From the sequence record OR545507.1: DNA of 64,000 bases; one strand, 5' to 3'. Of the stretch, positions 15,681 to 53,684 are shown in pieces; within the stretch, counting starts at the first letter, position 1; every line of letters begins with the position of its first letter. Both the position numbers and the translations under genes were made by a program. Under the pieces are notes generated by a model. It was not told the DNA's origin. It saw only the letters and a program-made list of their open reading frames with translations, and did not search any database.

Positions 15681-15710
15681 AGGGACTCCCTTAAAATTAA
15701 TATCAATCAT

Positions 15711-33979: not shown

Positions 33980-34064
33980 GCTGTTGCCCTTATCGTTGGT
34001 GTATGAATAAAACACTATTATAAAGTACTATCGCAAAAAATGATAGTACTTTAAATAAATTCTA

Positions 34065-34304
34065 TTACATTCCAACCATTGCAGCACGGATCGCAGTAGT
34101 GCTATATTTGAATCCGTCCGGCGTTTTATCTTGTCCAGTCTGTTCTAAAAATAACATCATATGACGGGCCGCATCATTACGATTAGTATTGGCGGCAATA
34201 AAGTCCTGGGCCAACCGGTATAATGATTCATCGTTATTAATCCAAAGGCTTACATTCCAATGAGTTTTGTTTTTGTGACCTAAGAACATTTTTGATTTAG
34301 CCAT
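34065..34304 (-). CDS. conserved phage hypothetical protein
   Basis: GHKNKTHWNVSLWINNDE...TPDG..YS...IRAAM; motif recalled from other phages. Confidence 0.75.
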   Translation of the reverse strand: MAKSKMFLGHKNKTHWNVSLWINNDESLYRLAQDFIAANTNRNDAARHMMLFLEQTGQDKTPDGFKYSTTAIRAAMVGM

Positions 34305-34397
34305 TTTTTTAATCCTCTTATATAGTGGGGAACTATTCCCCACCTGATGTAAAACATTATACGCTTTTAAACATAGTTTGCAAGTACTTTATTAAAC

Positions 34398-34760
34398 TTA
34401 TTCGTAAATTTTGCCACTGTCAGCCCATACCAGGAAACGAGGCATATTATCCCATGCATCTTGTTTTAAATTTAAACCGTGTAATACTTCTGTACTTTCC
34501 ATTCCTGGTACTGGTTTACTATACACCGCGAAATTTTCGCCCATATACTGATAAACCATCGTCAAATCACTGGCGATCATCTTATGGATCATCGCATCAA
34601 GCATCACGGTAGCGGCGTATTGTTCACGCTTAAGCGGCAACATTGTAATAAGTTCCCGATAAGCTGAAATGTGAATTTTTACCGTTTCAGCCGGAAGACC
34701 TTTCATCTCTTCACGGAAGTTGACCAGGTTAGAAATAATTTTATTGATTTGGGTCGCCAT
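34398..34760 (-). CDS. hypothetical early protein (first gene of the early run)
   Basis: start MATQINK after promoter-stem-loop. Confidence 0.7.
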   Translation of the reverse strand: MATQINKIISNLVNFREEMKGLPAETVKIHISAYRELITMLPLKREQYAATVMLDAMIHKMIASDLTMVYQYMGENFAVYSKPVPGMESTEVLHGLNLKQDAWDNMPRFLVWADSGKIYE

Positions 34761-35079
34761 CGTATTAATCTCTTTTAAAGTGTAGCGGGAAGTGTTCCCG
34801 CTCTCGATGTAAAACATTATACGCCTTTAAACATAGTTTGCAAGTACTTTCTACATGTACTTTTAAAATAGTTTTCTTTCTATATAGGGGAACTATCATT
34901 CAGTACTATTATTCAGTACTGAATCAACCAAATCACTACTACACCCCATAAAACGGCCTCAGACGCATTCTAACGCATTAATACACCTAAGCTATACATT
35001 TGCACCATTCCAATCATTCCAGGGCTTTACGGGCCGTTTAAACGCGTTAAATTATTTTCAATTATTTTGTTTTTAGCTA

Positions 35080-35167
35080 TTGACTCAGTACAGAAAAAGC
35101 GTATAATTACTACATAGACGCGAGAAAGCGGAAACCCCAGAGGGTGCGGAATTACGCCCAAAATTCA
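35080..35167 (+). repeat. promoter-CCCANNGGGTGC element H
   Basis: TTGACT-N16-TATAAT; CGC-GAGAAA-GCG; CCCCAGAGGGTGCGG. Confidence 0.8.
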
Positions 35168-35180
35168 AGATATAAAAAAA

Positions 35181-35262
35181 GGATACACTCCCGCACCCTA
35201 GCAGGTAAACGCACTTTCTCAGTACTGAAATATAGTACCATAGTCCGGCCCAGGATAGCAAG
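35181..35262 (-). repeat. promoter-GGGTGC element I (degenerate left arm)
   Basis: CTAGGGTGCGGGAGTGTATCC; TACTAT -10 upstream; converges on H. Confidence 0.7.
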
Positions 35263-35295
35263 CAAATTAATTAAAACTTTTTTGCTTCCAGGGTA

Positions 35296-35382
35296 TTGCT
35301 TTATTTTTTCAGTACTGTATAATAGTTCCATCAAGTCGAGAAAGACTCAAGCCCACCGGGTGCATAGTTACGCCCAAAATTC
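35296..35382 (+). repeat. promoter-CCCANNGGGTGC element J
   Basis: TTGCTT-N16-TATAAT; GTC-GAGAAA-GAC; GCCCACCGGGTGCA. Confidence 0.8.
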
Positions 35383-36710
35383 AGTACTGAAAAAATTTTT
35401 AAAAATATCCGTCCAGGCCGTTGACATTGCCCCCAGTTTATAAGATAATGATTCCAGATTCAGAAAAATCTAACTCCAGATACTGCGGGGAAACTATCCC
35501 CACGCGGTAGGGGAACTATTGGAAAAAACAAAATAAAATTTTGATTTAGCCGTCTATACTTCCAGACGTGTAACCATCTAGCCGTTTAGCCGTCCAAACG
35601 TCTAGCCATCCAGAAATCTAGCCGTCTAGATGGATAGCCATCTTTACTTCCAGACTTCTGGAGGGCTAGACATATCTACGCCCAAAATCCATCCAGGGTA
35701 ACTACACCCAAAATCCGTCAGTACTATACCATAGATCTATCTTTTGAAAGGGAGTATTCAGTACTGCCATCATAGCCCTCACTATGTTACCCTAGGAGGA
35801 TGAAGACCATCATGTAGTACTGAATACTGTTAGAGGGAATCCACCAGCACAAGCTGGTGGTATAATGCTTTAGATTAAAATCAGTACTGACACCATTCTG
35901 TTAATATCAGTACTGTTATTACGATTTTCATATGAGGTTCAAAAAGATGTACCACCACAGGAGGAACTATCTTTTCTGTACTGTCTCACGACAGGAGGTA
36001 GAGTAAATGAATTGTTCGCAGCAACTCATCACCCCTTGAAGCTATGTAGAACATTATACAGTACTGAATCATAATGTCAATAGCTTTCTTTCATTATTCA
36101 GTACTGATATTCTTGAGAACTACCCGACTACAAACATCATTATATCCCACAAATCATAAACGTCCCAACGTAAATTTCAACTTTCGAAGATCCAACTTTT
36201 ATTTCATAGGTACTCCAAAATTTTTAGGATCGAGATTTAGGATGGAGTACTAACCAACTTTTTGCTGGAGCCTCAAGGGGTAATTGAATTTTACCCCGAA
36301 GGGTAAAAGGGTAATTGTAATTAAGGTGAAAGTAATAATTCAGTACTAATCATTGCGTGATTACTTTTGATTACATTTGATGTAATTTGCAAAATGGAAA
36401 AGGAGCTTGGAAACTACAAAGTACGGCAGACTTCCTCTGCCTACTTAGTGGCATATCAGTACTGAATCATTCACACACATTTCCGTGCATTCTTGTCTAT
36501 ACTAATCAGTACTGAATCATATATAATCATTCTGTGATTCTACGGTGCTCATATAAATGTTTATATATGATTACTTATGACTACCTATGATTACGGGGTT
36601 TAGCCTGGGGAGAATCCTAGTGATCGCATTTGTCCAGGCTGAATTTTAACATATGCAACATATGTTAAAGCCTGTATAATGCTTCCACTACGGAGCTTCC
36701 CCTAGCTATA

Positions 36711-36902
36711 TTACTTCCTATATATAATCATTAAGATATAGTAGTACTGATTATACTGTACATTCTCTTTAATATTATAAGGGTCTATAGCAATCTCGGT
36801 ACATCTATTAAATGCATATCTATTAAATGCCAGTGGAATTATAGATCTAATCCATACTTGTTCATTTTCTTTTAGTTTACTTATATAGAAGTTTTTATAC
36901 AT
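36711..36902 (-). CDS. MHKEYY-family small protein
   Basis: MYKNFY...YYYILMIIYRK. Confidence 0.75.
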   Translation of the reverse strand: MYKNFYISKLKENEQVWIRSIIPLAFNRYAFNRCTEIAIDPYNIKENVQYNQYYYILMIIYRK

Positions 36903-36917
36903 AGTATTCTCTATTAA

Positions 36918-37100
36918 TTAATATGATAGTACTAGTGTTAGTACTGAGCACAATTGTTCTTTGTAGTTCTTAGGGTATATAGAATCTTTTATGCACTCAT
37001 TGAAGTGCCATAGGTATAATCTTGGGTCGCATTCTTTATATATTCTTACGGGGACGAATGTTAGTTTTCTTATATAGAATTCTTTATGTTCTTTATTCAT
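36918..37100 (-). CDS. MHKEYY-family small protein
   Basis: HKEFYI...VLTLVLSY. Confidence 0.75.
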   Translation of the reverse strand: MNKEHKEFYIRKLTFVPVRIYKECDPRLYLWHFNECIKDSIYPKNYKEQLCSVLTLVLSY

Positions 37101-37105
37101 ATTAG

Positions 37106-37291
37106 TTAGTGTCTGTATATAAGTAATAGTAAGAATACGTACTGCACATCTTCATCTTTAGTATTGAGTACTGTACGTATTGCGTCATGGAACAAGAATA
37201 TAGTACTTGGGTCATGAAAATTTAAAGGGGTTCTGGGTACGGCATGTTTGTAGTTCCCTTTAACAAATTGTGTGTAGTATTCTCTATGCAT
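37106..37291 (-). CDS. MHKEYY-family small protein
   Basis: MHREYY...YVFLLLIYRH. Confidence 0.75.
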   Translation of the reverse strand: MHREYYTQFVKGNYKHAVPRTPLNFHDPSTIFLFHDAIRTVLNTKDEDVQYVFLLLLIYRH

Positions 37292-37292
37292 A

Positions 37293-37478
37293 TTAGTACC
37301 TATATATTAGGGCGAGAATGTAGTACAATTCATATGGAATGTAATTTGGGGTGATCGCACACTGTGTATGGTAAATGAATTGTTCGGTATTTTTCTTATC
37401 CTTGATATCTATTGGGATTAGTGGTATAAGCATTTGGGAGTTTAGATCCAGATGGCTTAAGTAGAATTCTTTATGCAT
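37293..37478 (-). CDS. MHKEYY-family small protein
   Basis: MHKEFY...YYILALIYRY. Confidence 0.75.
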   Translation of the reverse strand: MHKEFYLSHLDLNSQMLIPLIPIDIKDKKNTEQFIYHTQCAITPNYIPYELYYILALIYRY

Positions 37479-37487
37479 ATTGTTCTC

Positions 37488-37676
37488 TTAGAATACGAAA
37501 GCTAGGTACAGGGTATGATACAGTACTCGATGGTAGCTGTCAAAATCTAGTATACATGCTTTAGTGCACATAGTAAAATACACTTTATCATTTTGTGCAT
37601 TGATACCGCGAGGTTTATCTAATAGATTAGTTCTGAGGTACATTGGGAAATATTTTGTGTAGTATTCTTTATGCAT
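37488..37676 (-). CDS. MHKEYY-family small protein
   Basis: MHKEYY...YHTLYLAFVF. Confidence 0.75.
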   Translation of the reverse strand: MHKEYYTKYFPMYLRTNLLDKPRGINAQNDKVYFTMCTKACILDFDSYHRVLYHTLYLAFVF

Positions 37677-37677
37677 G

Positions 37678-37860
37678 TTAGTACCTGAATATAAGTAGGA
37701 TAGTGTTATATAGCTGGTCATAACTACTACTATTTTCTATACTTCGTTCTATGCAGTTATTGAATCCCAGTACTGCCAAATCGTTATCCAGAGGGACTTT
37801 ATATCTGGCGTAGTGTACAAAAATGCTGGGGAGAAATTGTGTGTAGTATTCTTTGTGCAT
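37678..37860 (-). CDS. MHKEYY-family small protein
   Basis: MHKEYY...YNTILLIFRY. Confidence 0.75.
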   Translation of the reverse strand: MHKEYYTQFLPSIFVHYARYKVPLDNDLAVLGFNNCIERSIENSSSYDQLYNTILLIFRY

Positions 37861-37861
37861 A

Positions 37862-38053
37862 TTAGTACCTATATATTAGTAAAAGGATGTGATACAGTAC
37901 TCGATTATAGTCTTCAATATATATCGAGGATTTAGTGCACTGAATGAAGTAGTCTTTTTCGTAGTTTTTTTCTATACCCAATGGTTCTGTTGGTACAAGG
38001 TGTTGGAGATACATTGGGAGTTTCTCTATGTAGTATTCTTTGTGGTTATTCAT
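37862..38053 (-). CDS. MHKEYY-family small protein
   Basis: HKEYYI...YHILLLIYRY. Confidence 0.75.
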   Translation of the reverse strand: MNNHKEYYIEKLPMYLQHLVPTEPLGIEKNYEKDYFIQCTKSSIYIEDYNRVLYHILLLIYRY

Positions 38054-38054
38054 A

Positions 38055-38237
38055 TTAGTACCTGAATGTTAGCATTACTACGTAGTACAGCATATATGGA
38101 TTATCATCGTATATGAGCGTGTACTTAGTACATTGTTGGAACATTATCTTTGCGTGATCTTTTATTCCTATTGGTTCTGTTGGTATATGGTGCTGGAGAT
38201 GCATAGGGATTTTATCCCTGTAGTATTCTTTGTGCAT
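38055..38237 (-). CDS. MHKEYY-family small protein
   Basis: MHKEYY...YYVVMLTFRY. Confidence 0.75.
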   Translation of the reverse strand: MHKEYYRDKIPMHLQHHIPTEPIGIKDHAKIMFQQCTKYTLIYDDNPYMLYYVVMLTFRY

Positions 38238-38247
38238 GTTGTTCTCT

Positions 38248-38430
38248 TTAGTACTTATATATTAGGAGTAAAATGTTATAGTACTGGTTCATTGCGTCAT
38301 CATTTTCTATAGCACGTTTTACGCTATTCATGTAGTTAGATCGAGCGGCACGAGTTATGAGAAGAACTTTGTATGCAGCAAAGTATTTTTGCTGCACGGG
38401 TAGTTTAGAGATATAGTATTCTTTATACAT
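38248..38430 (-). CDS. MHKEYY-family small protein
   Basis: MYKEYY...YNILLLIYKY. Confidence 0.75.
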   Translation of the reverse strand: MYKEYYISKLPVQQKYFAAYKVLLITRAARSNYMNSVKRAIENDDAMNQYYNILLLIYKY

Positions 38431-39094
38431 AGTTTGTAATATACGTAATGAGGTGATGCATTTTCTTATTAGTACTGATAATTTCCTGTACATGTTTTGT
38501 CAGATTGTACGCGTTTTTATAGAGTACTGGATTATCGATTACAGTACTGTACATGAATAGTTCTTCTTCCTGTAGTTCTTTGTGTTCTAGTTCTTTGAGG
38601 AAATCTACAATTGATTTAGTTTCTTCTGAACGTTGTGCTTGCCAGAAGTGCATATTCTCGTGTACTTTTTCTGCATCAGTAGAGTATATGCCACCCATTT
38701 GGAATTGTGCTGTATTGACATCGTGGGAGGTGTTACAATTCCCGAAGAAGTATGTATTCCCGAAGTATAGCATTAAAGTGCACGGGGTATTATCCAACTG
38801 CATATTGATGATGAAGGATGCGTTCTTTAGTACCTTTGTGCTCGTATTAGTACTCAATACTTTTAAATCAGTATTATAGATATTCATATAATGAACAGCT
38901 ATATTATTTTTCTTCATGTACAATTCAAGGTTCTTTGATACGTTAACTCCATTTGTACTGGATTTTTCCTTTTTATTTCGTTTCTTTAGTACATTCGGGT
39001 GATACGTATATGCAGATGTAACTGATTCTGCCTGAATACTATTGAGGTACTTAAAGTGCTTAAGGTATTGTTTGCTGTGTGCATTAAGTTTCAT
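38423..39094 (-). CDS. hypothetical protein, FQxSLV-motif family
   Basis: EEELFMYSTVID; interrupts MHKEYY array. Confidence 0.75.
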   Translation of the reverse strand: MKLNAHSKQYLKHFKYLNSIQAESVTSAYTYHPNVLKKRNKKEKSSTNGVNVSKNLELYMKKNNIAVHYMNIYNTDLKVLSTNTSTKVLKNASFIINMQLDNTPCTLMLYFGNTYFFGNCNTSHDVNTAQFQMGGIYSTDAEKVHENMHFWQAQRSEETKSIVDFLKELEHKELQEEELFMYSTVIDNPVLYKNAYNLTKHVQEIISTNKKMHHLITYITNYV

Positions 39095-39104
39095 TTGGTT
39101 TCCT

Positions 39105-39284
39105 TTATATAGATGCCAGGGCGAGGATTTCCCTGTAGGGATTATCTTGTGTTAGTACAGCATAAATGCAGCTATTGAGATTAATATTTTTAGTACTTTT
39201 TGTTCCTAGTTTGTAGTACTTCACGAAGGTGTCGTACATGAAACGGTCTTTTATGGTTATACGTTCTCTATAGAATTGTTGCAT
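39105..39284 (-). CDS. MHKEYY-family small protein (59 aa, not in ORF track)
   Basis: hand translation MQQFYRERI...PYREILALASI. Confidence 0.7.
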   Translation of the reverse strand: MQQFYRERITIKDRFMYDTFVKYYKLGTKSTKNINLNSCIYAVLTQDNPYREILALASI

Positions 39285-39292
39285 AGTATTCC

Positions 39293-39475
39293 TTAAATAG
39301 CGATTAGTTTCATTACTTCTCTGTATGTGTACTTTTCGTTTTGTGCATCTCTTGTGACGACATATAGGAAGGTGTGTTTATCTTTTTTGTTCCCGCAATT
39401 GTAGAAAATATTGAACTTATTGAAGTTGAATCTTTCGGCGTGTTGTAGTTTAGTTAAATAGAATTCTATGTTCAT
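39293..39475 (-). CDS. MHKEYY-family small protein
   Basis: MNIEFY...YREVMKLIAI. Confidence 0.75.
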   Translation of the reverse strand: MNIEFYLTKLQHAERFNFNKFNIFYNCGNKKDKHTFLYVVTRDAQNEKYTYREVMKLIAI

Positions 39476-39483
39476 TTTCTTCC

Positions 39484-39669
39484 TTACATTTCAATAAGTT
39501 TAAGTACTGCTCGGTACGTGTACTTAGTTGTTAGTGCTTCTTTAATAGAAATGCAGAAGTAATGTTGTTTGTCTCTTATACTGCCGCGTTTGTAGTACCA
39601 CACATGGGAGTTGTGACTGTACTTGTCTCTGTCGGATAGTTGTTGGTAGTAGTAGCTTATATGATTCAT
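39484..39669 (-). CDS. MHKEYY-family small protein
   Basis: HISYYY...YRAVLKLIEM. Confidence 0.75.
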   Translation of the reverse strand: MNHISYYYQQLSDRDKYSHNSHVWYYKRGSIRDKQHYFCISIKEALTTKYTYRAVLKLIEM

Positions 39670-39878
39670 TATAATGTAATTAGCCTTACTATATTAAAGT
39701 ACTCGGTCCCTGGTGTACCTTGTAGTATATTACGCACGACATTTTTTTGGTGCTGGATGATTGCTGAAGGTGCGGTTCTTTTTAGTTTTTTTAAAGTACT
39801 GAATTCTTGTTTAAGTATGAACTGTACATCTTTAGGGAGAATATCTATGTAGTACTGATGAATGTTTGTAGTTTTCAT
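39669..39878 (-). CDS. MHKEYY-family small protein
   Basis: IHQYYI...YFNIVRLITL. Confidence 0.75.
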   Translation of the reverse strand: MKTTNIHQYYIDILPKDVQFILKQEFSTLKKLKRTAPSAIIQHQKNVVRNILQGTPGTEYFNIVRLITL

Positions 39879-39888
39879 ATAGCACCTT

Positions 39889-40083
39889 TTAGAACTTAAA
39901 GATGAGGTTCAGGATAGAGCGGTACTTAGTTTCAGGGAACTGATGTTCTATTGCATAACGTGTCGCCATCCTGAAATCGTAATTGTAATATAGATTATCC
40001 TTTCTCATAGGTGGTGCTAAAGAGAATGATAGCTGGTCTTGCTTGTGTAGTTTACTACCATAGAAATCTTTATGATTATTCAT
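39889..40083 (-). CDS. MHKEYY-family small protein
   Basis: HKDFY...YRSILNLIFKF. Confidence 0.75.
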   Translation of the reverse strand: MNNHKDFYGSKLHKQDQLSFSLAPPMRKDNLYYNYDFRMATRYAIEHQFPETKYRSILNLIFKF

Positions 40084-40285
40084 AGAAGTAGATTAGTCCT
40101 ATTAAACCTGAGTACATAATATTTTTGTTATTGCATTCGATTGCTTCTAGAGTACTACGTATACAATTATTAAAGCAATCTCTACCGAAGTGAGTATTGG
40201 TACTTACAGGTGATACACTCCTTAGAAACAATTGTTCTTCGTTGCTAAGGTATTTGGTGTAGAATTCTTTATGTTCAGTATTCAT
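40076..40285 (-). CDS. MHKEYY-family small protein
   Basis: HKEFY...YSGLIGLIYFYE. Confidence 0.75.
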   Translation of the reverse strand: MNTEHKEFYTKYLSNEEQLFLRSVSPVSTNTHFGRDCFNNCIRSTLEAIECNNKNIMYSGLIGLIYFYE

Positions 40286-40286
40286 A

Positions 40287-40490
40287 TTAGTACTCGATTA
40301 AAAGGGCAAGGATATAATAGTATTGCATACTTTCTGCCCCTTGTAAAGCATTTCTTATGATATTACTCCTGTACGAGTTCAGGAGTTTAGGACAACGTTT
40401 GTAGTGTATAAAAGTATTTTGTGTATACAGTAGGCTTTCTCGTAGACCTTTTGTTGGTAGTGCATCGATGTAGTACTGTTCAATGTTCAT
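40287..40490 (-). CDS. MHKEYY-family small protein
   Basis: MNIEQYY...YYYILALLIEY. Confidence 0.75.
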   Translation of the reverse strand: MNIEQYYIDALPTKGLRESLLYTQNTFIHYKRCPKLLNSYRSNIIRNALQGAESMQYYYILALLIEY

Positions 40491-40714
40491 ATAGATAGCA
40501 GTACTAAGATTTTTGATAATTGTTTATTGCTATCCCCGCAGATGTTGCTGTGTAAAATACTCACAATGAGGGTATCAATTGCATTGTTCATCATAAGGGT
40601 GCATCTTGGACTATTATAATTTTTTAGCTCAATTAGCCACGAACTATCCGAGAGAAATTCCCCGTACTCTAGTTCATTTAGAGTATTGAGGTAGTACTTA
40701 AGAGTATTTGTCAT
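40487..40714 (-). CDS. MHKEYY-family small protein (first of array)
   Basis: LKYYLN...KILVLLSI; GGAG RBS. Confidence 0.7.
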   Translation of the reverse strand: MTNTLKYYLNTLNELEYGEFLSDSSWLIELKNYNSPRCTLMMNNAIDTLIVSILHSNICGDSNKQLSKILVLLSI

Positions 40715-40739
40715 GTGTAGTTCTCCTTATATTCCTTCT

Positions 40740-40770
40740 ATAGTACACCAGTACTGAAAGGATGTCAAGG
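40740..40770 (-). promoter_or_regulatory. sigma70-type promoter for MHKEYY array
   Basis: TTGACA-N17-TACTAT with AGTACT in spacer. Confidence 0.7.
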
Positions 40771-40816
40771 GTTTTCTTTATGGGGTAAATATGATATAAT
40801 GAATAAGGAGGGATTT

Positions 40817-41953
40817 ATGTTACCTTTTGTTAGAATGTTAAATTATGGGAACGTAGCACCAGAAAAACTAAAAGTTCGTGATATTGTTGCAGGTGCTAAT
40901 TCATTATTACTAATAACCGAGGATAATGAATTATGGGTGCGTGGTAATAATTCGTATGGCAAATTAGGTATAGGAACTGATACTATAGTGAATGTAACCG
41001 AGTGGACTAAAGTTAGAGATGATGTTAAGTTTGCTTGTGCTAGTAATTTAGTATGCGTTGTATTAACTGTAGATAATAAAATTTTCTACTGTGGTGATGA
41101 ATGGTTTGAATCTGGTGGTTCGACAAGTTCTAAAGTTGTTACATGGAAAGATGTTACGACACAATTTAGTGCAGTGAATCTAAGCACAGTACGTGAAATG
41201 AAAATGACTTCTTATTGTGTAGGATTACTTACAAATGATAATAGATTATATGCTAAAGGATATGATAATAACCAATCATTTGGTGGTTCAACAAGCAAAG
41301 TTAATGCTGTATTAGTTGCGTCAAATGTTTCAAAATTCTACACTTCTCTATCTGGTACTATATATTCTAGTACTACTGGTGGTTACTACCGCTGTGGTAT
41401 AAGCAATACTGGAGCATTGGGTACTAGCACAAATTTAACTTCTTATAATTTGTACTCTGCTCCCGAATTTGCATCCGAATGTGCAGTTGGTATGTCAACA
41501 TTAAACTCTGGTATATTATATTATGATACTAATGGTAGCACTAGATATGTTATAGCAGGTCAAAATAGATATTATCAACTAGGTAATTCTTCTTCAAATA
41601 CCACAAACGTATATTCGTATACAGAATTAACCGGATATAGAGGCAGGTTTAGGGATTTGTGGAGTGATATGAATAACTCTGTTCTTTCTTTTGCTATAAG
41701 CACAGATGGCAATACTTTATATTATGCTGGTACTAACACTACACTATCTTCTGGTGACCCTGGTGTTGAATATTCATCTACATTTAAAGAAGTACCACAC
41801 GGGTTTAATGATATAACAAAGGCGGCATCGTTAGCCTATCTATCTATAGTGCAAGATTCAACGGGATGGTATTATTCTGGAAATGCAACTACGTTATATG
41901 GTTTGCCATCGAGTGATGAATTTATACCATTACCATTACCAACAATAATTTAA
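40817..41953 (+). CDS. MLPF-leader RCC1/BLIP-II-like beta-propeller protein 1 (putative virion fibre/appendage protein)
   Basis: MLPFVRMLNYGNVAP; G-N-YGKLG-G repeats. Confidence 0.8.
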   Translation: MLPFVRMLNYGNVAPEKLKVRDIVAGANSLLLITEDNELWVRGNNSYGKLGIGTDTIVNVTEWTKVRDDVKFACASNLVCVVLTVDNKIFYCGDEWFESGGSTSSKVVTWKDVTTQFSAVNLSTVREMKMTSYCVGLLTNDNRLYAKGYDNNQSFGGSTSKVNAVLVASNVSKFYTSLSGTIYSSTTGGYYRCGISNTGALGTSTNLTSYNLYSAPEFASECAVGMSTLNSGILYYDTNGSTRYVIAGQNRYYQLGNSSSNTTNVYSYTELTGYRGRFRDLWSDMNNSVLSFAISTDGNTLYYAGTNTTLSSGDPGVEYSSTFKEVPHGFNDITKAASLAYLSIVQDSTGWYYSGNATTLYGLPSSDEFIPLPLPTII

Positions 41954-42024
41954 ATACAGGCCAGTACTTGATACTGGCTTTTCTTTTTTGTATTAAATAT
42001 AGTATAATGAATAAGGAGGGAAAT

Positions 42025-43227
42025 ATGTTACCTTTTGGAAGAATGGTTAAGTACGCAAATATTGCACCAGGTCCAGAACCTGTAGAGTTCTCAGATGTTT
42101 TACAACAACATTATACAAACTGTATGTATCTCCATAACCCAACTAATACTTTATATGGTTATGGTAGTAATAACTTTTACCAATTTGGTCTTGGGAATTC
42201 AGCAGCAGTTTCGTCATTTACAGTACTTGCAAGGAACTGTGCAGCCTTTTGGCTTGGTGTTCAAGGTTCATTGATGATTGATTTGGATAATAAAATATAC
42301 TACACTGGGTCGGTTGGTGCATTTTCTGATTATGGAGATGCAACACCTGTTAATGGTTATTTGACAACATGGACTGATGTTACTGTTGCATTTAATAAAA
42401 TAGGTGTTATGGCTAATATGATCAAGAGTGTATATATAGGTGAAAGTACTAGAATATTATTAACCGATGGTAGAGTAATTGCGTGTGGAAGAAATACTAA
42501 TGGTGAATGTGGCTCTGGTAATAAAAATTCCATCCCTACACTCACAGTTATGACTAATATGGGTGAAGTTACACATATGGCATGTTCATTACAAGGAACG
42601 CACTATATCAAATCAAATAAAGATGCATGGTTTTGTGGTAAGGATAACTTTGGTGAAAGTGGATGTGGTGGTAGTTTTGTTGTATATTTGAACAAATTCG
42701 TGATTAGTAATGTAGAACATATTAGTACTACATACGATGTTACTTGGTGGTTTACTACTGGTGGGCCTGTATATTATAGCGGGGCTAACAGTTCTGGACA
42801 AGCTGGTAATGGTACGACTACATCGGTAAATCAGCTAACACCAATTAGGAACACATCGGTCACGGTTGATGTAAGTAAGTACAGTACTTTTATTTGTCCA
42901 AGTAATATGGGAAATGCATCAATTGGTGCACCTATGGCACAATACGCACCATATGTTAGAAGTAGTGGTGCTAACTCATATGGTCAAGAAGGTAATGGAA
43001 CTAATACATTAGTTAGAACTTGGAATATTTTTAATCTTAGTGCAATAAGTGGTGGTTATGACAATGTTCTTATGGCATCTAAAGATTGGAGCAGAACCAT
43101 AATAATTACTAAAGATTATAAATTATATGCATGTGGTGGCTGGAATGGTAGTGGTGGTAGATTACCTGATGGCACTTATAGTATTACTACACTAACATTA
43201 ATGCCAACGCAGTTATGGCAACAATAG
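42025..43227 (+). CDS. MLPF-leader beta-propeller protein 2
   Basis: MLPFGRMVKYANIAP; GRNTNGECG, GANSYGQEG repeats. Confidence 0.8.
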   Translation: MLPFGRMVKYANIAPGPEPVEFSDVLQQHYTNCMYLHNPTNTLYGYGSNNFYQFGLGNSAAVSSFTVLARNCAAFWLGVQGSLMIDLDNKIYYTGSVGAFSDYGDATPVNGYLTTWTDVTVAFNKIGVMANMIKSVYIGESTRILLTDGRVIACGRNTNGECGSGNKNSIPTLTVMTNMGEVTHMACSLQGTHYIKSNKDAWFCGKDNFGESGCGGSFVVYLNKFVISNVEHISTTYDVTWWFTTGGPVYYSGANSSGQAGNGTTTSVNQLTPIRNTSVTVDVSKYSTFICPSNMGNASIGAPMAQYAPYVRSSGANSYGQEGNGTNTLVRTWNIFNLSAISGGYDNVLMASKDWSRTIIITKDYKLYACGGWNGSGGRLPDGTYSITTLTLMPTQLWQQ

Positions 43228-43235
43228 GAGGGAAT

Positions 43236-44345
43236 ATGTTACCTTTTGGAAGAATGATTAGGTATGGAAATATTGTCCCTGGTCCTAAAAAAATAATTAA
43301 AGTTGGTGCTTCTACCCAAGGCCAATTCTTATTGACTGATTCACATGATTTATATTACATAGGTAGAAATCAAGGTGGTGAATCTGGAAATGGTAATACC
43401 AACACGGTGTCTTCGTGGACATTAGTAAGTGCAGATGTTTCTAATTTTTTCGTGGGTGATCGTACACTTGTTATTATTAAAAATGATAATACGATATGGA
43501 CATCAGGTCAAACGTACTGGTTCTCATCTTCTACAACTACTTCTTACAGTACTGTATTAGTTGAAAGAACTAATTGGTTTACCAATGCTATACCAGTAAG
43601 TGAAATTGCTAATATTGTATGCACAAATGGTTTAATATTTGTACTTAGCACTAATTCAGTACTCTATGGTGCAGGAGATAATGGATATCGTGGTTCTTTG
43701 GGTATTGGTTCATCATCAATTTACACATTAACTCAATGTGCTACGAACGTTCGTAAAGTAATGACCAATGCGAATGATAGTATGTATCTTACATTAGATA
43801 ATAAGCTATATAGTTCTGGATGGAATAGTAGTGGGCAGCATGGTACGGGGAACCAAACACAAATTAACACTTGGGGATTGCGTAGTTCTGGTGTAATCGA
43901 TGCAGCCATTGGTGGTAATGCATTAAATTACTATAATGGTACATCATATTTCGTATGTGGTCAAACTCCAAACTTTCTTAGTTCAGGTACGACTACATTC
44001 CGTGCAGTTCCTTTAAGTACTTTGCCTAATAGTTCTCCATTGTTTATGACGAATTCACCTGCCTTAAATACTGCTACACAAATGGTAATTACTAGTACAT
44101 ATCAGAAGGGTGTTGGGGCGAACCGTGGTTTGGGATTAAACAATTCTCAAACTGGTGCTATATATAGTGCTACCAATTTACAATTACCCGTTGAAGTTAG
44201 TGAGATTAGGGATGTTCTTTTTAGTGATGGTTTGACATCGATATTAACCAAAAATGGAGACGTGTATAGTACTGGATCGTATTACGCCATTCCAGGTGCA
44301 ATCGAGGATGTTGCAGTCTTTACTAAAATTGATTTACCAAAATAA
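43236..44345 (+). CDS. MLPF-leader beta-propeller protein 3
   Basis: MLPFGRMIRYGNIVP; GWNSSGQHG repeats. Confidence 0.8.
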   Translation: MLPFGRMIRYGNIVPGPKKIIKVGASTQGQFLLTDSHDLYYIGRNQGGESGNGNTNTVSSWTLVSADVSNFFVGDRTLVIIKNDNTIWTSGQTYWFSSSTTTSYSTVLVERTNWFTNAIPVSEIANIVCTNGLIFVLSTNSVLYGAGDNGYRGSLGIGSSSIYTLTQCATNVRKVMTNANDSMYLTLDNKLYSSGWNSSGQHGTGNQTQINTWGLRSSGVIDAAIGGNALNYYNGTSYFVCGQTPNFLSSGTTTFRAVPLSTLPNSSPLFMTNSPALNTATQMVITSTYQKGVGANRGLGLNNSQTGAIYSATNLQLPVEVSEIRDVLFSDGLTSILTKNGDVYSTGSYYAIPGAIEDVAVFTKIDLPK

Positions 44346-44415
44346 CATAATGCCAGTACTCTGTACTGGCTTTCTTATTTGTATTAAATATAGTATAATG
44401 AATAAAGGAGGGAAT

Positions 44416-45585
44416 ATGTTACCTTTTGGAAGAATGATTAAGTACGGAAATATTGCACCTGCTAAACCAAATATTAAAAAAATACTTGCTAACAACTATA
44501 ATGTTGCTGTTTTAACAAACAGTGGTGATTTATATGTGCGTGGTGAGAATGCAAATGGTCTTTTGGGTTTAGGTCACAAAAATACTGTTACTACATGGAC
44601 TTATAGTACTTCTGGTGTTCAAGATTTTTGGATGGGAGCCACGACGATAGTTCTTAAGAAAAGCAATGATGAAATATGGTACAGTGGAAGTTCAACAACT
44701 GTTGGTATGAAAGGGGCAGCAGTATCAATATGGACTTCTGCTATGCCAACATTCGATACATTAACATTACCAATATTAGATATAGCAGTTAGTTATCAGA
44801 CTACAAGTGTGTTACTGTCAGACCAAACAATATGGAGTACTGGAGTGGGGTCAGATGGTCAGTTGGGTGATGGGACAACAACTAACAATATTGCTGGTAA
44901 ATTCGTCAAAAGTACTGTTCCGGCCGCAGCAAATCAATTACCTGTTAAATTGTTTGCAAGTAATTTAATGCACGGTTATGTTACAAACCAAGGATGGCTA
45001 TTTTATACAGGAAGAGTAAATGCAGTTACAAGTTCAGGAAGTAAGTTATATACTATATATTATGGTGCTCCTACCAGCTTAAGAAATACAATTAATATCA
45101 AGTACTACACGGAGAATGGTACTTCAATGGCAATGGCAATTGGTACTGATCCAAATGGAAAAACCATCATCGCAAATGGCGGTTCGAGAATATTTGGTGC
45201 ACAAGCAGATGGGACAAATGGTTCTCTCAATGATTATAGAGCATTTGAGGTTCAAACTGCTTCACTAATGCCACCCGGTGATGTAGTAAGCATTGCTAAC
45301 AATACTTCATATTATAACCAAGTTATTGCTACAACAGATGGTATATATTGTTGCGGCTACAATCAATCTTCAGAAGCTGGTATGTTAGGTATTGGTACAT
45401 CTACCAATGCATTGGTATATACCAAAGCAATCGTGCCTGATGGGTTTGATTATAGTAAGTCGCAGATGGCAGGTGGGTATAACCGAACTTATATAACTGA
45501 TGGTAATTTTGTATATAGCACAGGGACAAATGTCACATATGGTGGCGTTAGTAGCTTAGAATTTGTATTAGATTCACCAGTTTAA
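44416..45585 (+). CDS. MLPF-leader beta-propeller protein 4
   Basis: MLPFGRMIKYGNIAP; GENANGLLG, GSDGQLG. Confidence 0.8.
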   Translation: MLPFGRMIKYGNIAPAKPNIKKILANNYNVAVLTNSGDLYVRGENANGLLGLGHKNTVTTWTYSTSGVQDFWMGATTIVLKKSNDEIWYSGSSTTVGMKGAAVSIWTSAMPTFDTLTLPILDIAVSYQTTSVLLSDQTIWSTGVGSDGQLGDGTTTNNIAGKFVKSTVPAAANQLPVKLFASNLMHGYVTNQGWLFYTGRVNAVTSSGSKLYTIYYGAPTSLRNTINIKYYTENGTSMAMAIGTDPNGKTIIANGGSRIFGAQADGTNGSLNDYRAFEVQTASLMPPGDVVSIANNTSYYNQVIATTDGIYCCGYNQSSEAGMLGIGTSTNALVYTKAIVPDGFDYSKSQMAGGYNRTYITDGNFVYSTGTNVTYGGVSSLEFVLDSPV

Positions 45586-45656
45586 ATATATGCCAGTACT
45601 CTGTACTGGCATTCTTATTTGTATTAAATATAGTATAATGAATAAAGGAGGGAAAT

Positions 45657-46805
45657 ATGTTACCTTTTGCAAGAATGATGAATTATGGGAATATTGCCCC
45701 TGGTAAGGATAGGCGTTTTAAAATATATTCAAGTGATTCTATGTATCTTCATGATACTTATACTAATAAGTTGTATGCATCTTCTGCGACGAATTGGGGT
45801 ACTGGAACAGGTGTAGCATCGAGTAAATTTATTCTTTGTGCAGAGAATGTTAAACGAGTTCTATTGGAAGATAACAGTAGTAGTTGTCAATTGTATGAAG
45901 AGAAAGGTACTGGAAAAGTTTTTATCACTGGTAACACGAAGGCATTCACTGGTGTAACTGATACAAAAACTTTGTGGACGGACTGTACTACGTGGATAAC
46001 ATCAGGTGGTATTAATGTTTCTGATATAAAATACATGAGTAGTTTTAATGATATGAAGGTGAATTTGATAACAAACGATGGTACGTTGTATTGTTGTGGA
46101 GTTAACAATAACTCGAACCTATCATCATTTGGTGATGGTACAAACATTAATTCTTTTAACACATTCAAAAGGGTAGATACTATAACTTCGGTTAAAAAGG
46201 CAGTTGGTAACATATACCTAAAAGAAGATAATACTTTATGGGGTTGTGGTTTTAACTATTACTATCAGTTAGGTACAGGTAATCAAACTTCTATTACTGG
46301 GGTGACGATGATTGCTTCGGATGTTATAGATTTTGATGTAAGTTATCAAAGTACATTTTTTATTAAATCGGATAATAATTTGTACGCTTGTGGTAAACAG
46401 TTCGGTGCACAATACGGGAACGAATTTGGCACAGGTGGTACTTCTTCATCTACCGATATACAATACAAAACTCCGACATTATTGAGTTCAGGAGTTTATA
46501 CTCTATATACTTGTGTTAGTAACATGGCATCACATATAGCTAAAGGTGATGAAGTTCTATACGCATCTGGGTCGAATGGATTTGGTCAATTAGGTGTTGG
46601 TAATAATATTAATCAGTACTCATATACTCCTTCGTATACTTCGTTTAATAGTTCGTGTAATTTGGTACGCACTCCATCTGGTTCACTTATACTTACGGAC
46701 ACTGAGCAATTATATTATTGTGGGTATGCTATGGTAGTAATGGGGGGAATTGCTGGACAAAACATTCTTAGTTATACAGAAGTTGATATGTCATTTATAC
46801 AATGA
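45657..46805 (+). CDS. MLPF-leader beta-propeller protein 5
   Basis: MLPFARMMNYGNIAP; GFNYYYQLG, GSNGFGQLG. Confidence 0.8.
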   Translation: MLPFARMMNYGNIAPGKDRRFKIYSSDSMYLHDTYTNKLYASSATNWGTGTGVASSKFILCAENVKRVLLEDNSSSCQLYEEKGTGKVFITGNTKAFTGVTDTKTLWTDCTTWITSGGINVSDIKYMSSFNDMKVNLITNDGTLYCCGVNNNSNLSSFGDGTNINSFNTFKRVDTITSVKKAVGNIYLKEDNTLWGCGFNYYYQLGTGNQTSITGVTMIASDVIDFDVSYQSTFFIKSDNNLYACGKQFGAQYGNEFGTGGTSSSTDIQYKTPTLLSSGVYTLYTCVSNMASHIAKGDEVLYASGSNGFGQLGVGNNINQYSYTPSYTSFNSSCNLVRTPSGSLILTDTEQLYYCGYAMVVMGGIAGQNILSYTEVDMSFIQ

Positions 46806-46876
46806 TTTAATGCCAGTACACTGTACTGGCTTTCTTATTTGTATTAAATATAGTATAATGAATAAAGGAGGAATTT

Positions 46877-48019
46877 ATGTTACCTTTTGCAAGAATGATG
46901 AATTATGGGAATATTGCACCAGAACCAAAACCTCTATTTAAAAATAGATTACAAGCAAATTATAATACTCGTTTTTATTTGCATGTTAATGGTGACTTGT
47001 ACTGGTATGGTTCATCTTCATTTGGACAAGGTGGTAATGGTTCATTACAATCATCCACCGTATGGACCCGTGTGAATAATAATATTGAACGTTACTGGGG
47101 TGGTGTTCTTGGTTCCATTGCCATTAAGAATGATGGAACTATTTGGTTCACAGGTGCTAGTATAGTAATGCCACAAATCGGAACAAATACAAATGGGGTT
47201 TGGATTGATGTAACCCAGTACTTCACTGATTTTGGTGTCAGTGCTGATGATATTGATGGTATTGCTGTTGGGCAGAATTTGCGTGTATTTTTAAAAAATG
47301 GAAAATGGTTCTACTGTGGTACTGGCGAAGCTGGTGTATTTGGTAACGCGTCAACAGCTAATGTCACATCGTTCAGATACAGCACTATAGAAAATGTTAA
47401 AAGTTATGGCTGTTCTTTGCTCAGTACTGGGTTAGTACTTGATGATGGCTCCTATTGGTATGCAGGAAATACTGTTGCTCCTGGTAGTACAAAAACATCA
47501 AATATATTAAGTTTTACAAAAGACAATACGATCACCAATGCTATACAAGCTGTAAATACATACCGTACTTCATATATATTTCTTAATGATGGTTCAGTGA
47601 AGGTTGCTTCACCAAATGCATATGGTCAAGCTGGTGTAGGTACAGTATCAGCAGTACCAATGAGTACATTAATTCCCAATTTATCATTCCAAGGTGAAAT
47701 AGAGTTGGTGGGTGGTTTATCCAACAACGAAGGGAATGGATGTGTTGTTAAAAATAATAATAAGTTATATACTTGTGGTCGAAATACCTATGGTCTATGT
47801 GGTGTTAATCAAACATCCGAAAATATACTAACTTTCACCGAAATGGTTCTTGATGCATTAGAAGGAAGACGAATTTCAGGCTTCGTAAATGATAATTTCT
47901 ATTCAATGATAATTGATGAAAATAACAATTTGTATATGTGTGGTTTGGCTGAACTTGGAAATGTTCCAGTCAATAGAGTTCCAACAAGGGTTCCTGATTC
48001 ACTTCTACCGTGGAAATAA
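46877..48019 (+). CDS. MLPF-leader beta-propeller protein 6
   Basis: MLPFARMMNYGNIAP; GRNTYGLCG. Confidence 0.8.
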   Translation: MLPFARMMNYGNIAPEPKPLFKNRLQANYNTRFYLHVNGDLYWYGSSSFGQGGNGSLQSSTVWTRVNNNIERYWGGVLGSIAIKNDGTIWFTGASIVMPQIGTNTNGVWIDVTQYFTDFGVSADDIDGIAVGQNLRVFLKNGKWFYCGTGEAGVFGNASTANVTSFRYSTIENVKSYGCSLLSTGLVLDDGSYWYAGNTVAPGSTKTSNILSFTKDNTITNAIQAVNTYRTSYIFLNDGSVKVASPNAYGQAGVGTVSAVPMSTLIPNLSFQGEIELVGGLSNNEGNGCVVKNNNKLYTCGRNTYGLCGVNQTSENILTFTEMVLDALEGRRISGFVNDNFYSMIIDENNNLYMCGLAELGNVPVNRVPTRVPDSLLPWK

Positions 48020-48089
48020 TATAATGCCAGTATCAAGTACTGGCATTTCTTTTTGATTAAATATAGTATAACAAATAAAGGAGGGAATT

Positions 48090-49277
48090 ATGTTACCTTT
48101 TGCAAGAATGATGAATTATGGGAATATTGCCCCAGTACCACTTCAAATTAAGAAAATAATCCCAACTGATTTAGATGTTGTGGTTCTGTATACGGATGGT
48201 CAACTATATGCACGTGGGAATAATAGTTTTGGGAAATTCGGTAGAGGAAACAACACTGCATTAAAATCATGGACATTAATTAGAGAAAACGTTAACGATT
48301 GCTGGCTTACACAAGGAACTTTATTAGTAAAAGACAATGACTCAAATTATTATTACTGTGGATATGGTAGTCATATTGGTTTATCAACTAGTACTACTAC
48401 GTTTTTAAGTTATAACCAATATATTCAAAATTTGTACACACAAAGTTCAAGTACTTCAATTAAACAGATGTATGGAGGTACTACGTGGTTTACTTTCTTA
48501 ATGGACAATAATACAATATGGAGTACAGGGTGGAACAGTGCTAGACAATTCGCCGATGGAACGGGAACTACTTATGAAATAACCGATGGTTCATTTGTAA
48601 AAGCGGTCACACCTAATGTTGATATTGCACAAATACAGTCAACAAATAACTGTGTATTGTTGTTTGATAAACAAAATAATTTATATATTGGTGGTGTTAC
48701 ATCCGGTATAAGTTCCGCGACTACATGGACTTCATATAATCAATATACTTTATATCAACCAAATACAACATACACAAAAACGTTACAATACACAGGATGC
48801 TCAACTGGTGCAGTAAGTGCTTTAGTTGAAAATCCAAATACAGGAGCACGTCAGTTCCTTGTCGGTGGGTTAGCTAATAATGGGGCATGGGGAAATAACA
48901 CTACATCTAGCTCTGTTAATGGAGTTTTAGGAAATAACAGTACGACGTTACCACCCGGTACTTTGTATTCAATTCATACTGGATACCCACCACAATCTAG
49001 TATACTAATTACGAGTACTGGTGTATATGCAACTGGTTTAAATGCCAGTAGTTATGCTGGTTCATTGGGTATTGGTACTAGTGCAACTGTTGGTAAGTTT
49101 ACTGCATGTCCAATGCCTACACAAATAACATATTCTATGTATGATAAAATAAAAATATATAGAGGTTCATATCGTACATTTCTAACTGATATGAAAAATA
49201 TATATTCAACCGGAACTTATGATGATGGTGGTCCTAGTACAACTAGATATGTACTAGATACACCCCGACAATTATAA
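48090..49277 (+). CDS. MLPF-leader beta-propeller protein 7
   Basis: MLPFARMMNYGNIAP; GNNSFGKFG. Confidence 0.8.
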   Translation: MLPFARMMNYGNIAPVPLQIKKIIPTDLDVVVLYTDGQLYARGNNSFGKFGRGNNTALKSWTLIRENVNDCWLTQGTLLVKDNDSNYYYCGYGSHIGLSTSTTTFLSYNQYIQNLYTQSSSTSIKQMYGGTTWFTFLMDNNTIWSTGWNSARQFADGTGTTYEITDGSFVKAVTPNVDIAQIQSTNNCVLLFDKQNNLYIGGVTSGISSATTWTSYNQYTLYQPNTTYTKTLQYTGCSTGAVSALVENPNTGARQFLVGGLANNGAWGNNTTSSSVNGVLGNNSTTLPPGTLYSIHTGYPPQSSILITSTGVYATGLNASSYAGSLGIGTSATVGKFTACPMPTQITYSMYDKIKIYRGSYRTFLTDMKNIYSTGTYDDGGPSTTRYVLDTPRQL

Positions 49278-49349
49278 TATAATAGCCAGTACTCAGTACT
49301 GGCTTTTCTTTTTGTATTAAATATATTATAATGAATAAAGGAGGGAATT

Positions 49350-50087
49350 ATGTTACCTTTTGGAAGAATGATTAAGTACGGGAATGAAATTGAATATAAG
49401 CCACATGGTGAACAATTAATCACGACAATAGGAACAACACAATTTACAGTTCCTGCTGGCGTTACCGAAATATCAGTATGTGTTATTTCGCCGGGTGGTC
49501 AACGTGGTGCTGGCGGCGGCTTATCGTGGCGTAATAATATTCCGGTTACTAGTGGTGAGTACTTAAGTGTTTCTCTTACGCATACCAACACTACTACACC
49601 AGTTGAAAACGGTTTATATCGTGGAACTGAAAAACTATGTGTTAGCTTCACTGGTGCATATACGGTTGGTGGACTAGGTGGAAAAGCTGCTAACGCTATT
49701 AATGATGGTGGTGGTAATGGTGGCAATACTGGTGTAAGTGGTGGTGCAGTCATTGGTGGTGGTGCTGGTGGCTACACAGGTAAAGGTGGTAACGGAGATG
49801 CAATCACTGGTGAAAATGGTGCTGGCGGCGGCGGGGGCGGTGGTACATTCTATAATACCTCGTTCATTGGTACGGGTGGTGGTACTGGTATCATTGTTCA
49901 AGGTGCTAATGGTATTGGTGGTAGCTACGGTGGTTCATATAATGGTGGTGCTGGTAGTGGTGGTGCTGGTAAGATGTATGGTGGTGGTGGTAGTATATGG
50001 GATAATTCTTCTTATACGGCTGCTGGTGGTGGTGCTGTGCGAATAATATGGGGAAATGGGAGATATTATCCTAACAATTCAGTATAA
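49350..50087 (+). CDS. MLPF-leader glycine-rich protein (fibre-like)
   Basis: same leader followed by FTVPAGVTEISV and GGGAGG-rich domain, no RCC1 repeats. Confidence 0.75.
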   Translation: MLPFGRMIKYGNEIEYKPHGEQLITTIGTTQFTVPAGVTEISVCVISPGGQRGAGGGLSWRNNIPVTSGEYLSVSLTHTNTTTPVENGLYRGTEKLCVSFTGAYTVGGLGGKAANAINDGGGNGGNTGVSGGAVIGGGAGGYTGKGGNGDAITGENGAGGGGGGGTFYNTSFIGTGGGTGIIVQGANGIGGSYGGSYNGGAGSGGAGKMYGGGGSIWDNSSYTAAGGGAVRIIWGNGRYYPNNSV

Positions 50088-50157
50088 AATATAGGCCAGT
50101 ACAGAGTACTGGCTTTTCTTTTTGATTAAATATAGTATAATGAATAAAGGAGGAAAT

Positions 50158-51333
50158 ATGTTACCTTTTGCAAGAATGGTTAAGTATGGAAATATTAAAC
50201 CTGCACCTTCTGGTGTATTAAAGATTAGTACATCGTCATCACATATGGGTATGTTATTTGATAGTGGTAACTTATATCTACGTGGAAGTGGTGCACATTA
50301 TAGGCTAGGAAATAATAGTACGGAGTATGTACAAAATGGGTGGGTACAGTGTCCATATAAAGTTTCTAATGTTTGGTGTTTATTCGCAGGGACAATTATA
50401 CTTACGACTGACGGAGAATTTTACTTAGCAGGGCAAATGAACTATGTCGGTGTATCTGCATCACCTGTTCCCGGATGGACTAATATTACATCTATATTGT
50501 CTACAATTCCAAGCCTTACTACAGTTCAAGATATAGCTTCTACCGAAACTACCGCATCCAATGGTTCTTTGTTAATTCTGTTAAGTGATGGTAACTTATA
50601 TGGGATAGGCCGTAATGCTGGGGGTGAATTGGGTGTTACTGGAATAAAATCAACACCTATTTTGATTAACACGGGTGTTACTTTAATCGCAGGAACACAG
50701 TCGGGTGGTGCTTTCCATTTTGTAAAAAATGGACAATATTACAGATGTGGTAATAATGCAAGTTATAACCTAGGTTCAAGTTCATCTAAACTATCCACAT
50801 TTACAGTAAGTACTGATATATCTGGAACAGTTATTGGTATTTCATGTACTCCTGAAACCACTTCAGTACTTACATCCAATAGAAATAAGATTAATGTATA
50901 TACTGCTGGAAAAAACACTGATTATTGTTTAGGAATAGGGTATGGCGACACTACTATTATCATGAGTCCATTTAGTACCACTCCTGTAATTAGTGGTATT
51001 ATACCAGATGCTGGGTCGATGAACAATCACAGTTTGAATTATTTTATAATGGCAATGACACAGAATGGTAAACTTTATACATGTGGTAGTGGTGTTCCTC
51101 TTGGTTGGCCTGTTACTACTGCATCAGAAAGATCTTATTACCACCAGGTACAATATGAGGATATGGATGTTGCACCAGATGTTAATGCATTTTCAGTACA
51201 AGGTGGTTCTGGTGTGTTATACGCGTTAGTAGGGACTAATGAGGTGTACTGGTGTGGTAACGGGTCTATGTTTCAGGAACAGAGTCCAGGTACACAACAA
51301 GTTAAAATGAAGAAAATGATTTTACCAGAATAG
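50158..51333 (+). CDS. MLPF-leader beta-propeller protein 9
   Basis: MLPFARMVKYGNIKP; GRNAGGELG. Confidence 0.8.
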   Translation: MLPFARMVKYGNIKPAPSGVLKISTSSSHMGMLFDSGNLYLRGSGAHYRLGNNSTEYVQNGWVQCPYKVSNVWCLFAGTIILTTDGEFYLAGQMNYVGVSASPVPGWTNITSILSTIPSLTTVQDIASTETTASNGSLLILLSDGNLYGIGRNAGGELGVTGIKSTPILINTGVTLIAGTQSGGAFHFVKNGQYYRCGNNASYNLGSSSSKLSTFTVSTDISGTVIGISCTPETTSVLTSNRNKINVYTAGKNTDYCLGIGYGDTTIIMSPFSTTPVISGIIPDAGSMNNHSLNYFIMAMTQNGKLYTCGSGVPLGWPVTTASERSYYHQVQYEDMDVAPDVNAFSVQGGSGVLYALVGTNEVYWCGNGSMFQEQSPGTQQVKMKKMILPE

Positions 51334-51341
51334 GAGTGAAT

Positions 51342-52484: not shown

Positions 52485-52494
52485 AGGAGGGAAT

Positions 52495-53674: not shown

Positions 53675-53684
53675 GGAGAAAATT

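Follow-up and report, generated by a model that had tools for sequence, protein, structure and literature searches.

What is a long run of very short genes, set at the edge of the terminal repeat of a jumbo phage, there to do? We asked this of Escherichia phage Sharanji, using a 64,000-nucleotide (nt) stretch of record OR545507.1 (the window), in which positions 36711-40714 of the minus strand hold 17 open reading frames (ORFs) of 59-75 amino acids (aa) and one ORF of 223 aa. The small ORFs are genes, 16 of which can be placed in a single family with a predicted compact helical fold. We tentatively read the array, with a little less than even confidence, as an early operon whose products, small soluble proteins built on a common scaffold, would serve as a repertoire of binders in host takeover or counter-defence.

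The small genes and the family they form

Over positions 36500-41000 the window is 100% identical to Sharanji (same coordinates) and to phage vB_EcoM_G17 (G17), and it shares 87-98% identity with 34 further jumbo phages of Escherichia and Salmonella in the 121Q/PBECO4 group (genus Asteriusvirus). Sharanji reportedly induces filamentation (PMC13282480). The genes of the array are given here from the first (a17) to the last (a01), where core, subgroup B and subgroup C are the divisions of the family set out below.

40487-40714, minus strand: a17, 75 aa, first gene; family-like motifs at its ends, homology to the family unsupported (hhalign 5-25%)
40287-40490, minus strand: a16, 67 aa, subgroup C; matches a13 at E 3e-10
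40076-40285, minus strand: a15, 69 aa, core; phrog_11711 at E 1.7e-12
39889-40083, minus strand: a14, 64 aa, core; phrog_11711 at E 1.4e-21
39669-39878, minus strand: a13, 69 aa, subgroup C; absent from 121Q
39484-39669, minus strand: a12, 61 aa, subgroup B; matches a11 at E 1.6e-10
39293-39475, minus strand: a11, 60 aa, subgroup B
39105-39284, minus strand: a10, 59 aa, subgroup B; unannotated in the Sharanji record
38423-39094, minus strand: the 223-aa gene, phrog_29152, function unknown; fixed position within the array
38248-38430, minus strand: a09, 60 aa, core; internal ATG start, annotated in G17
38055-38237, minus strand: a08, 60 aa, core; phrog_11711 at E 8e-26
37862-38053, minus strand: a07, 63 aa, core, the modelled protein; phrog_11711 at E 6e-28
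37678-37860, minus strand: a06, 60 aa, core; phrog_11711 at E 1.3e-23
37488-37676, minus strand: a05, 62 aa, core; internal ATG start
37293-37478, minus strand: a04, 61 aa, core; annotated in 121Q
37106-37291, minus strand: a03, 61 aa, core
36918-37100, minus strand: a02, 60 aa, core; annotated in 121Q
36711-36902, minus strand: a01, 63 aa, core, last gene; phrog_11711 at E 8e-23, stop 266 nt from the boundary at 36445

All 17 small ORFs were found at the originally predicted coordinates, on the minus strand, and they are real coding genes. Intergenic spacing ranges from -8 to +15 nt, leaving about 80 of the 4004 nt non-coding, which makes the array roughly 98% coding. Many gene junctions consist of a stop-N-ATG arrangement or an overlap, and most starts are preceded by a ribosome-binding site of the AGG or AAGGA type. 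For the ORFs at 37488-37676 and 38248-38430, the start that is consistent with the family is an internal ATG. At the guanine plus cytosine (G+C) content of the genome (34%), a frame stays open for 60 codons by chance about 1% of the time; a run of 18 ORFs abutting on a single strand is therefore well outside what chance would produce. Every small ORF is annotated in at least one of the 121Q, G17 and Sharanji records, always as a hypothetical protein: 16 in 121Q, from which the a13 gene is altogether missing, 15 in G17, which omits 36918-37100 and 37293-37478, and four in Sharanji. The ORF at 39105-39284, which the original prediction had picked up outside its gene list, is absent from the Sharanji record, yet annotated in both G17 and 121Q.

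Comparison of the Sharanji genes with their orthologues gave pooled ratios of nonsynonymous to synonymous substitution (dN/dS, Nei-Gojobori) of 0.40 for WPEC5, 0.38 for E9.1, 0.42 for TH47, 0.24 for A4 and 0.28 for 121Q. Reading frames and lengths are preserved even in JNE01 and Turkey5, the most divergent phages. These values suggest that the copies are kept under purifying selection. That the ORFs are untranslated, and that the region encodes an RNA or nothing at all, is scarcely credible. Such a view could point to the sparse annotation of the Sharanji record (4 of 17) and to the absence of proteomic evidence, but it is contradicted by dN/dS values below 0.45 for orthologues, by the near-complete tiling of an AT-rich genome with ORFs whose frames are conserved in nine phages, and by a confident fold prediction.

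The original prediction described 17 tandem paralogues, and for 16 of them the kinship held. A profile hidden Markov model (HMM) built from the 17 ORFs retrieved exactly those 17 among the 977 ORFs of the window, with the next match at E 0.04. Eleven ORFs (a01-a09, a14 and a15) form a solid core, both in pairwise comparisons (E down to 1e-19) and in leave-group-out HMM tests. Subgroups B (a10-a12) and C (a13 and a16) are weakly linked to this core within the Sharanji genome alone. After homologues from eight related phages had been added (147 sequences), profile-profile comparison with hhalign joined subgroup B to the core with a probability of 95.5% (E 1.4e-8, 53 columns) and subgroup C with a probability of 93.1% (E 3e-7, 56 columns). 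The first gene, a17, reached 5-25% against the family. Its orthologue is the first gene in eight of the nine phages, and none was detected in CMSTMSU. We take the family supported by these comparisons to comprise 16 ORFs, with a17 as a possible member.

Eight core paralogues were scanned against PHROGs v4, and all matched phrog_11711 over its full length (profile positions 1-62) at E-values of 1.7e-12 to 6e-28. Neither a17 nor the subgroup B and subgroup C proteins scanned (one of each) matched it at E ≤0.01. The function of phrog_11711 is listed as unknown, so membership explains nothing.

Fold, distribution and turnover

An AlphaFold2 model of a07, based on a 63-sequence alignment, was confident, with a predicted local distance difference test score (pLDDT) of 91.9 and a predicted template modelling score (pTM) of 0.77. 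It consists of short helices at residues 4-9 and 14-17, a proline-containing loop, and a helical hairpin formed by residues 30-45 and 49-61. The N-terminal, central and C-terminal motifs of the original prediction hold across 121 unique family members. At the N-terminus these are H4 (49%), K5 (56%), E6 (66%), an aromatic or hydrophobic residue at position 7 and Y8 (100%); the central motif is F36 (60%) and C39 (53%), and the C-terminal helix carries L57, L59 (92%), I60 and Y63. Within the same members, conservation is concentrated at Y7, Y8, L12, F36, C39, L44, Y53, I56, L57, L59, I60 and Y63. Almost all of these are hydrophobic or aromatic, and their i/i+3/i+4 spacing puts them along a single face of each helix. 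Elsewhere the most frequent residue stays short of two-thirds, and at most of these positions below 0.35. Such a pattern is that of a core that is conserved and surfaces that have diversified, and the model predicts a compact, soluble helical-bundle protein of about 60 residues.

The original prediction also raised the possibility of membrane association through a hydrophobic C-terminal helix, which these data do not bear out. Anchoring of the small proteins in a membrane by this helix is very improbable, even though Leu, Ile and Tyr abound in the last 11-13 residues. With 13 residues, the helix is too short to span a membrane; it is amphipathic, interrupted by polar and charged positions, and packs against helix 30-45 in the model, where the two form the core of a globular domain. 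None of the array proteins has a 19-residue window with a mean Kyte-Doolittle hydropathy above 1.08 (the usual threshold is about 1.6), and their polar N-terminus argues against a signal peptide.

The family is restricted to the genus Asteriusvirus. A tblastn search of 50,697 phage records found 36 matching records, all of them Asteriusvirus-like. A word search of 5.8 billion proteins returned 61 matches, and an exhaustive profile search of 1.84 billion representative proteins returned 33 at E ≤0.001, all 41-69 aa long. The contigs of three divergent matches carry the same locus, with small genes that include one of 221-224 aa, and with RCC1-like genes on the other side where the contig reaches that far.

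The HMM and structure searches that the original prediction had called for found phrog_11711 and the family's own members, and no match to a solved structure. Pfam had no match for any small ORF, PADLOC gave a noise-level Cas8b row and nothing else for the small family, and a sequence profile search of the PDB yielded nothing credible for it. For the a07 model, the best Foldseek match in the PDB had an E-value of 3.5 and was generically helical, while VIA-align against 48,161 chains reached a best Z of 4.3 with generic helical hairpins; neither search matched a helix-turn-helix or other known DNA-binding fold. A fold search of BFVD matched the family's own members only. The best ESM Atlas score (0.77) lay within the range reached by shuffled proteins. 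A resemblance to the fold of AcrIF23 (Z 3.4) was within noise. For anti-defence inhibitors, there was no significant match in the general libraries Pfam, PADLOC, PDB sequences, PDB folds and BFVD. We found no published description of this array, and nothing on its transcription or function. The family is already annotated, as hypothetical proteins, but previously undescribed, and tandem arrays of this style are known from jumbo phages.

Array content differs considerably between the phages. E9.1 has 21 copies, WPEC5 20, Sharanji and A4 17 each, 121Q 16, CMSTMSU 15, TH47 and Turkey5 14 each, and JNE01 13. Clustering at ≥62% identity resolved about 47 orthogroups in the nine phages. Their order is collinear, with whole cassettes inserted, lost or replaced. 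The differences in copy number between relatives consist of cassettes of distinct orthogroups, not of extra copies of one gene. The closest paralogue pair within any genome is 50-59% identical at the protein level, and Tandem Repeats Finder detected no gene-length period in the DNA of the array. With within-genome identities of at most 59% and no DNA repeat, the array is old, diversified and mosaic rather than recently amplified. Calling it an accordion, as originally proposed, is therefore misleading: copy number does differ between close relatives, but near-identical DNA copies are missing.

The 223-aa gene does split the array, as the original prediction stated, but its assignment to an FQxSLV family was not sustained. 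The FQxSLV motif is absent, and a BLASTP comparison with the 207-aa FQxSLV gene gave an E-value of 0.95 (the FQxSLV genes used for comparison lie at 2918-3550 and 8001-9370). A relationship to the small family was also rejected (hhalign 0.2%). The gene has no paralogue in the window (phmmer) and no Pfam match, and its homologues occur only in Asteriusvirus-like contigs. Its fold model was poor (pLDDT 49) and was not used. The 3' end of the gene overlaps the next small gene by 8 nt in Sharanji and by 8-17 nt in every phage examined, and that small gene is of a different orthogroup in different phages.

The promoter and the terminal repeat

The array is headed by the promoter that the original prediction had placed at 40740, divergent from an RCC1-like array (there called the MLPF array). 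Two expression signals precede a17.

40740-40768, minus strand: sigma-70-type promoter with TTGACA, a 17-nt spacer containing AGTACTG, and TACTAT (10 of 12 consensus matches)
40717-40730, minus strand: strong AAGGAG ribosome-binding site, some 8 nt upstream of the a17 start codon, conserved in the phage alignment

Seven phages share this promoter, the divergent JNE01 and Turkey5 among them, with an invariant -35 and a consensus-like -10 element. TTGACA followed by AGTACTG at a distance of 6-12 nt occurs at 16 sites in the window (17092-40768), against 0.01 expected. Fourteen of these lie in the terminal repeat, one is the array promoter, and one is a non-conserved site in a05. The combination appears to mark a single class of phage promoter. 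Fourteen of the 16 sites are on the minus strand, and a CAGTACTG palindrome lies in the spacer. An internal promoter-like site within the array (37543-37515) matches the consensus at 11 of 12 positions; we treated it as incidental because its -35 hexamer is not conserved in CMSTMSU, WPEC5 and A4.

Sharanji is reported to have a direct terminal repeat of 20,668 bp (PMC11895373). In the window, the G17 record terminates exactly at position 36445; combined with this length, that places the repeat at about 15778-36445. Thus 266 nt of unique sequence separate the array from the repeat, towards which its genes are read. Near the boundary, two exact copies of a 16-nt motif that contains CAGTACTG lie on the minus strand at 36455-36470 and 36505-36520, both within 75 nt of 36445 and the closer at a distance of 10 nt. 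A further ten, less exact copies are found elsewhere, most of them in the terminal repeat. The motif may be linked to end formation or packaging. Between the array and the boundary, about 45 nt past the stop of the last gene, is a perfect AT-rich palindrome (36645-36667, minus strand) with 10-nt arms and a 3-nt loop, which is not a typical intrinsic terminator because it lacks a T-run. Over 34000-42000, the plus-strand GC skew flips from negative to positive at about 36 kb, near the repeat boundary and not at the divergent promoter (40.75 kb). The coding strand of the array is therefore G-poor, unlike that of other minus-strand genes, which fits a protein composition in which Tyr, His, Leu and Ile are frequent and Gly, Asp and Glu scarce.

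Two further arrays lie close by. On the plus strand, an array of RCC1-like beta-propeller genes (40799-55331, with a match to PF25390) diverges from the small genes and adjoins them through one common intergenic region in every locus where the upstream flank was captured. On the minus strand, the GTxxQE array (9571-15713) comprises 27 helical paralogues of about 70-85 aa and ends 65 nt from the other boundary of the repeat, at 15778. The repeat is thus flanked on both sides by small-protein arrays with the same reading direction. The two small-protein families are unrelated (hhalign probability below 1%), in line with the original view of the Sharanji array as an independent, diversified family.

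Possible roles and known systems

On the reading we favour, the array would be one polycistronic operon that a host-type (sigma-70) promoter at 40768-40740 drives in the direction of the left terminal repeat. It encodes 16 diverged paralogues, an unrelated 223-aa protein and, as its leader gene, a17, whose kinship is uncertain. On this reading the family arose by old tandem duplications and its copies were subsequently held by purifying selection, and related phages acquired, lost and exchanged whole gene cassettes. Early transcription by host RNA polymerase is suggested because the conserved promoter carries the signature found in the terminal repeat and the array lies so close to the repeat boundary; the proteins would be made early, in the cytoplasm. 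Consistent with this, the virion proteome of phage phAPEC6 lists two RCC1-like proteins and none of the small array proteins (PMC7247149). They would form a repertoire of single-domain binders, each aimed at a different host or defence component, and the content of the array would tune the phage to different E. coli strains. Anti-defence or host-modulating roles, which the original prediction had put forward as candidates, are plausible.

Several points weigh against this account. The evidence on the timing of transcription and on translation is indirect, and early timing, binding and targets are all inferred. Four wastewater metatranscriptome runs from one study contained short contigs of related phages, which fall here and there on the array as well as on its flanks and may stem from DNA; they show neither transcription nor its absence. 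Small proteins can easily escape virion mass spectrometry. The dN/dS values between orthologues are below 1 and give no sign of an arms race. In the libraries searched, no fold or sequence link to a known anti-defence or takeover protein emerged.

Other roles can be proposed for the same genes, and we rate each of them, like membrane anchoring, below a repertoire of binders. It is rather unlikely that the paralogues combine among themselves, or join the 223-aa protein or the RCC1-like propellers, as adaptors, chaperones or subunits of a larger structure. A shared operon, with co-expression and translational coupling, would suit such partners, as would the fixed position of the 223-aa gene and its recurrent overlap with the next small gene, the adjacent RCC1-like array, and the presence of two RCC1-like proteins in the phAPEC6 virion (PMC7247149). 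Cassette-by-cassette differences in content nevertheless fit independent modules better than a fixed assembly, and the small gene that follows the 223-aa gene changes in orthogroup from phage to phage. Somewhat less probable again is a largely dispensable product of tandem duplication that fills a large capsid, its single copies having little specific function. Capsid filling and genome expansion were proposed for jumbo-phage arrays by Hua et al. 2017 (PMC5646251), and the free gain and loss of copies between close relatives agrees with that proposal. Purifying selection on orthologues (dN/dS 0.24-0.42), frames and lengths kept even in the most divergent phages, and a fold core conserved across 121 variants all weigh against it.

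A role as small nucleic-acid-binding regulators, retuning host or phage transcription or translation early in infection, is improbable to a slightly greater degree. Small helical proteins behind an early-type promoter would be natural candidates for it, and 10 of the 17 have an isoelectric point (pI) of at least 8.8. The range of pI, however, extends from 5.0 to 10.0 and there is no conserved basic patch, the only conserved polar positions being K5 and E6; nor was any nucleic-acid-binding fold matched by Foldseek or VIA-align at the scores given above. The repertoire of binders can also be cast in a bolder form, which we consider doubtful: a cassette-style collection on an orphan helical scaffold, with about 47 specificities in nine phages, each neutralising a different host factor or defence system. 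Together with the RCC1-like array and the second small-protein array, it would make up 'terminal variable regions' convergent with the families at the genome ends of poxviruses and African swine fever virus (ASFV).

The annotation of Sharanji can be corrected for the 13 of 17 small genes missed in its record. Asteriusvirus phages are widely isolated as therapy candidates, and more than 80% of their genes are without an assigned function. The small-gene array and its two neighbours make up about 25 kb beside the terminal repeat and are among the regions most variable between close relatives. Should the proteins indeed bind host or defence components early in infection, differences in host range would be explained in part by what the array contains, and the array would be a source of new small inhibitors on a compact, well-predicted 60-residue scaffold. 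If the array is instead dispensable, it would favour the idea that neutral tandem duplication accounts for part of the growth of jumbo genomes.

The nearest parallel lies in the same genome. Judging by copy number, the array described by Hua et al. 2017 (PMC5646251) is the GTxxQE (LGTNYQE) array, which is likewise a minus-strand operon of helical paralogues, in a size range of some 60-85 aa, abutting the terminal repeat. It differs from the array studied here in family and in motifs.

In large eukaryotic DNA viruses, terminal multigene families and 'genomic accordions' are known, such as the amplification of K3L in poxviruses and the multigene families (MGF) of ASFV. The array differs from these in showing no recent amplification (at most 59% identity, no DNA repeat) and no homology to them, and there is no evidence that it has a role in host range or immune evasion. 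The likeness is one of analogy only: in both cases paralogue arrays lie near genome ends and differ in content between related viruses, and a beta-propeller family, RCC1-like in Sharanji, stands beside a family of small proteins.

The host-takeover module of Bacillus phage SPO1 and the pre-early genes of T5 are sets of small, packed genes with strong host-type promoters, located at a terminally redundant genome end. The Sharanji array resembles them in its tightly packed small genes behind a host-type promoter at the terminal repeat. Those modules encode mostly unrelated small proteins, whereas the array is a single expanded family, whose putative early timing is read from promoter type and position.

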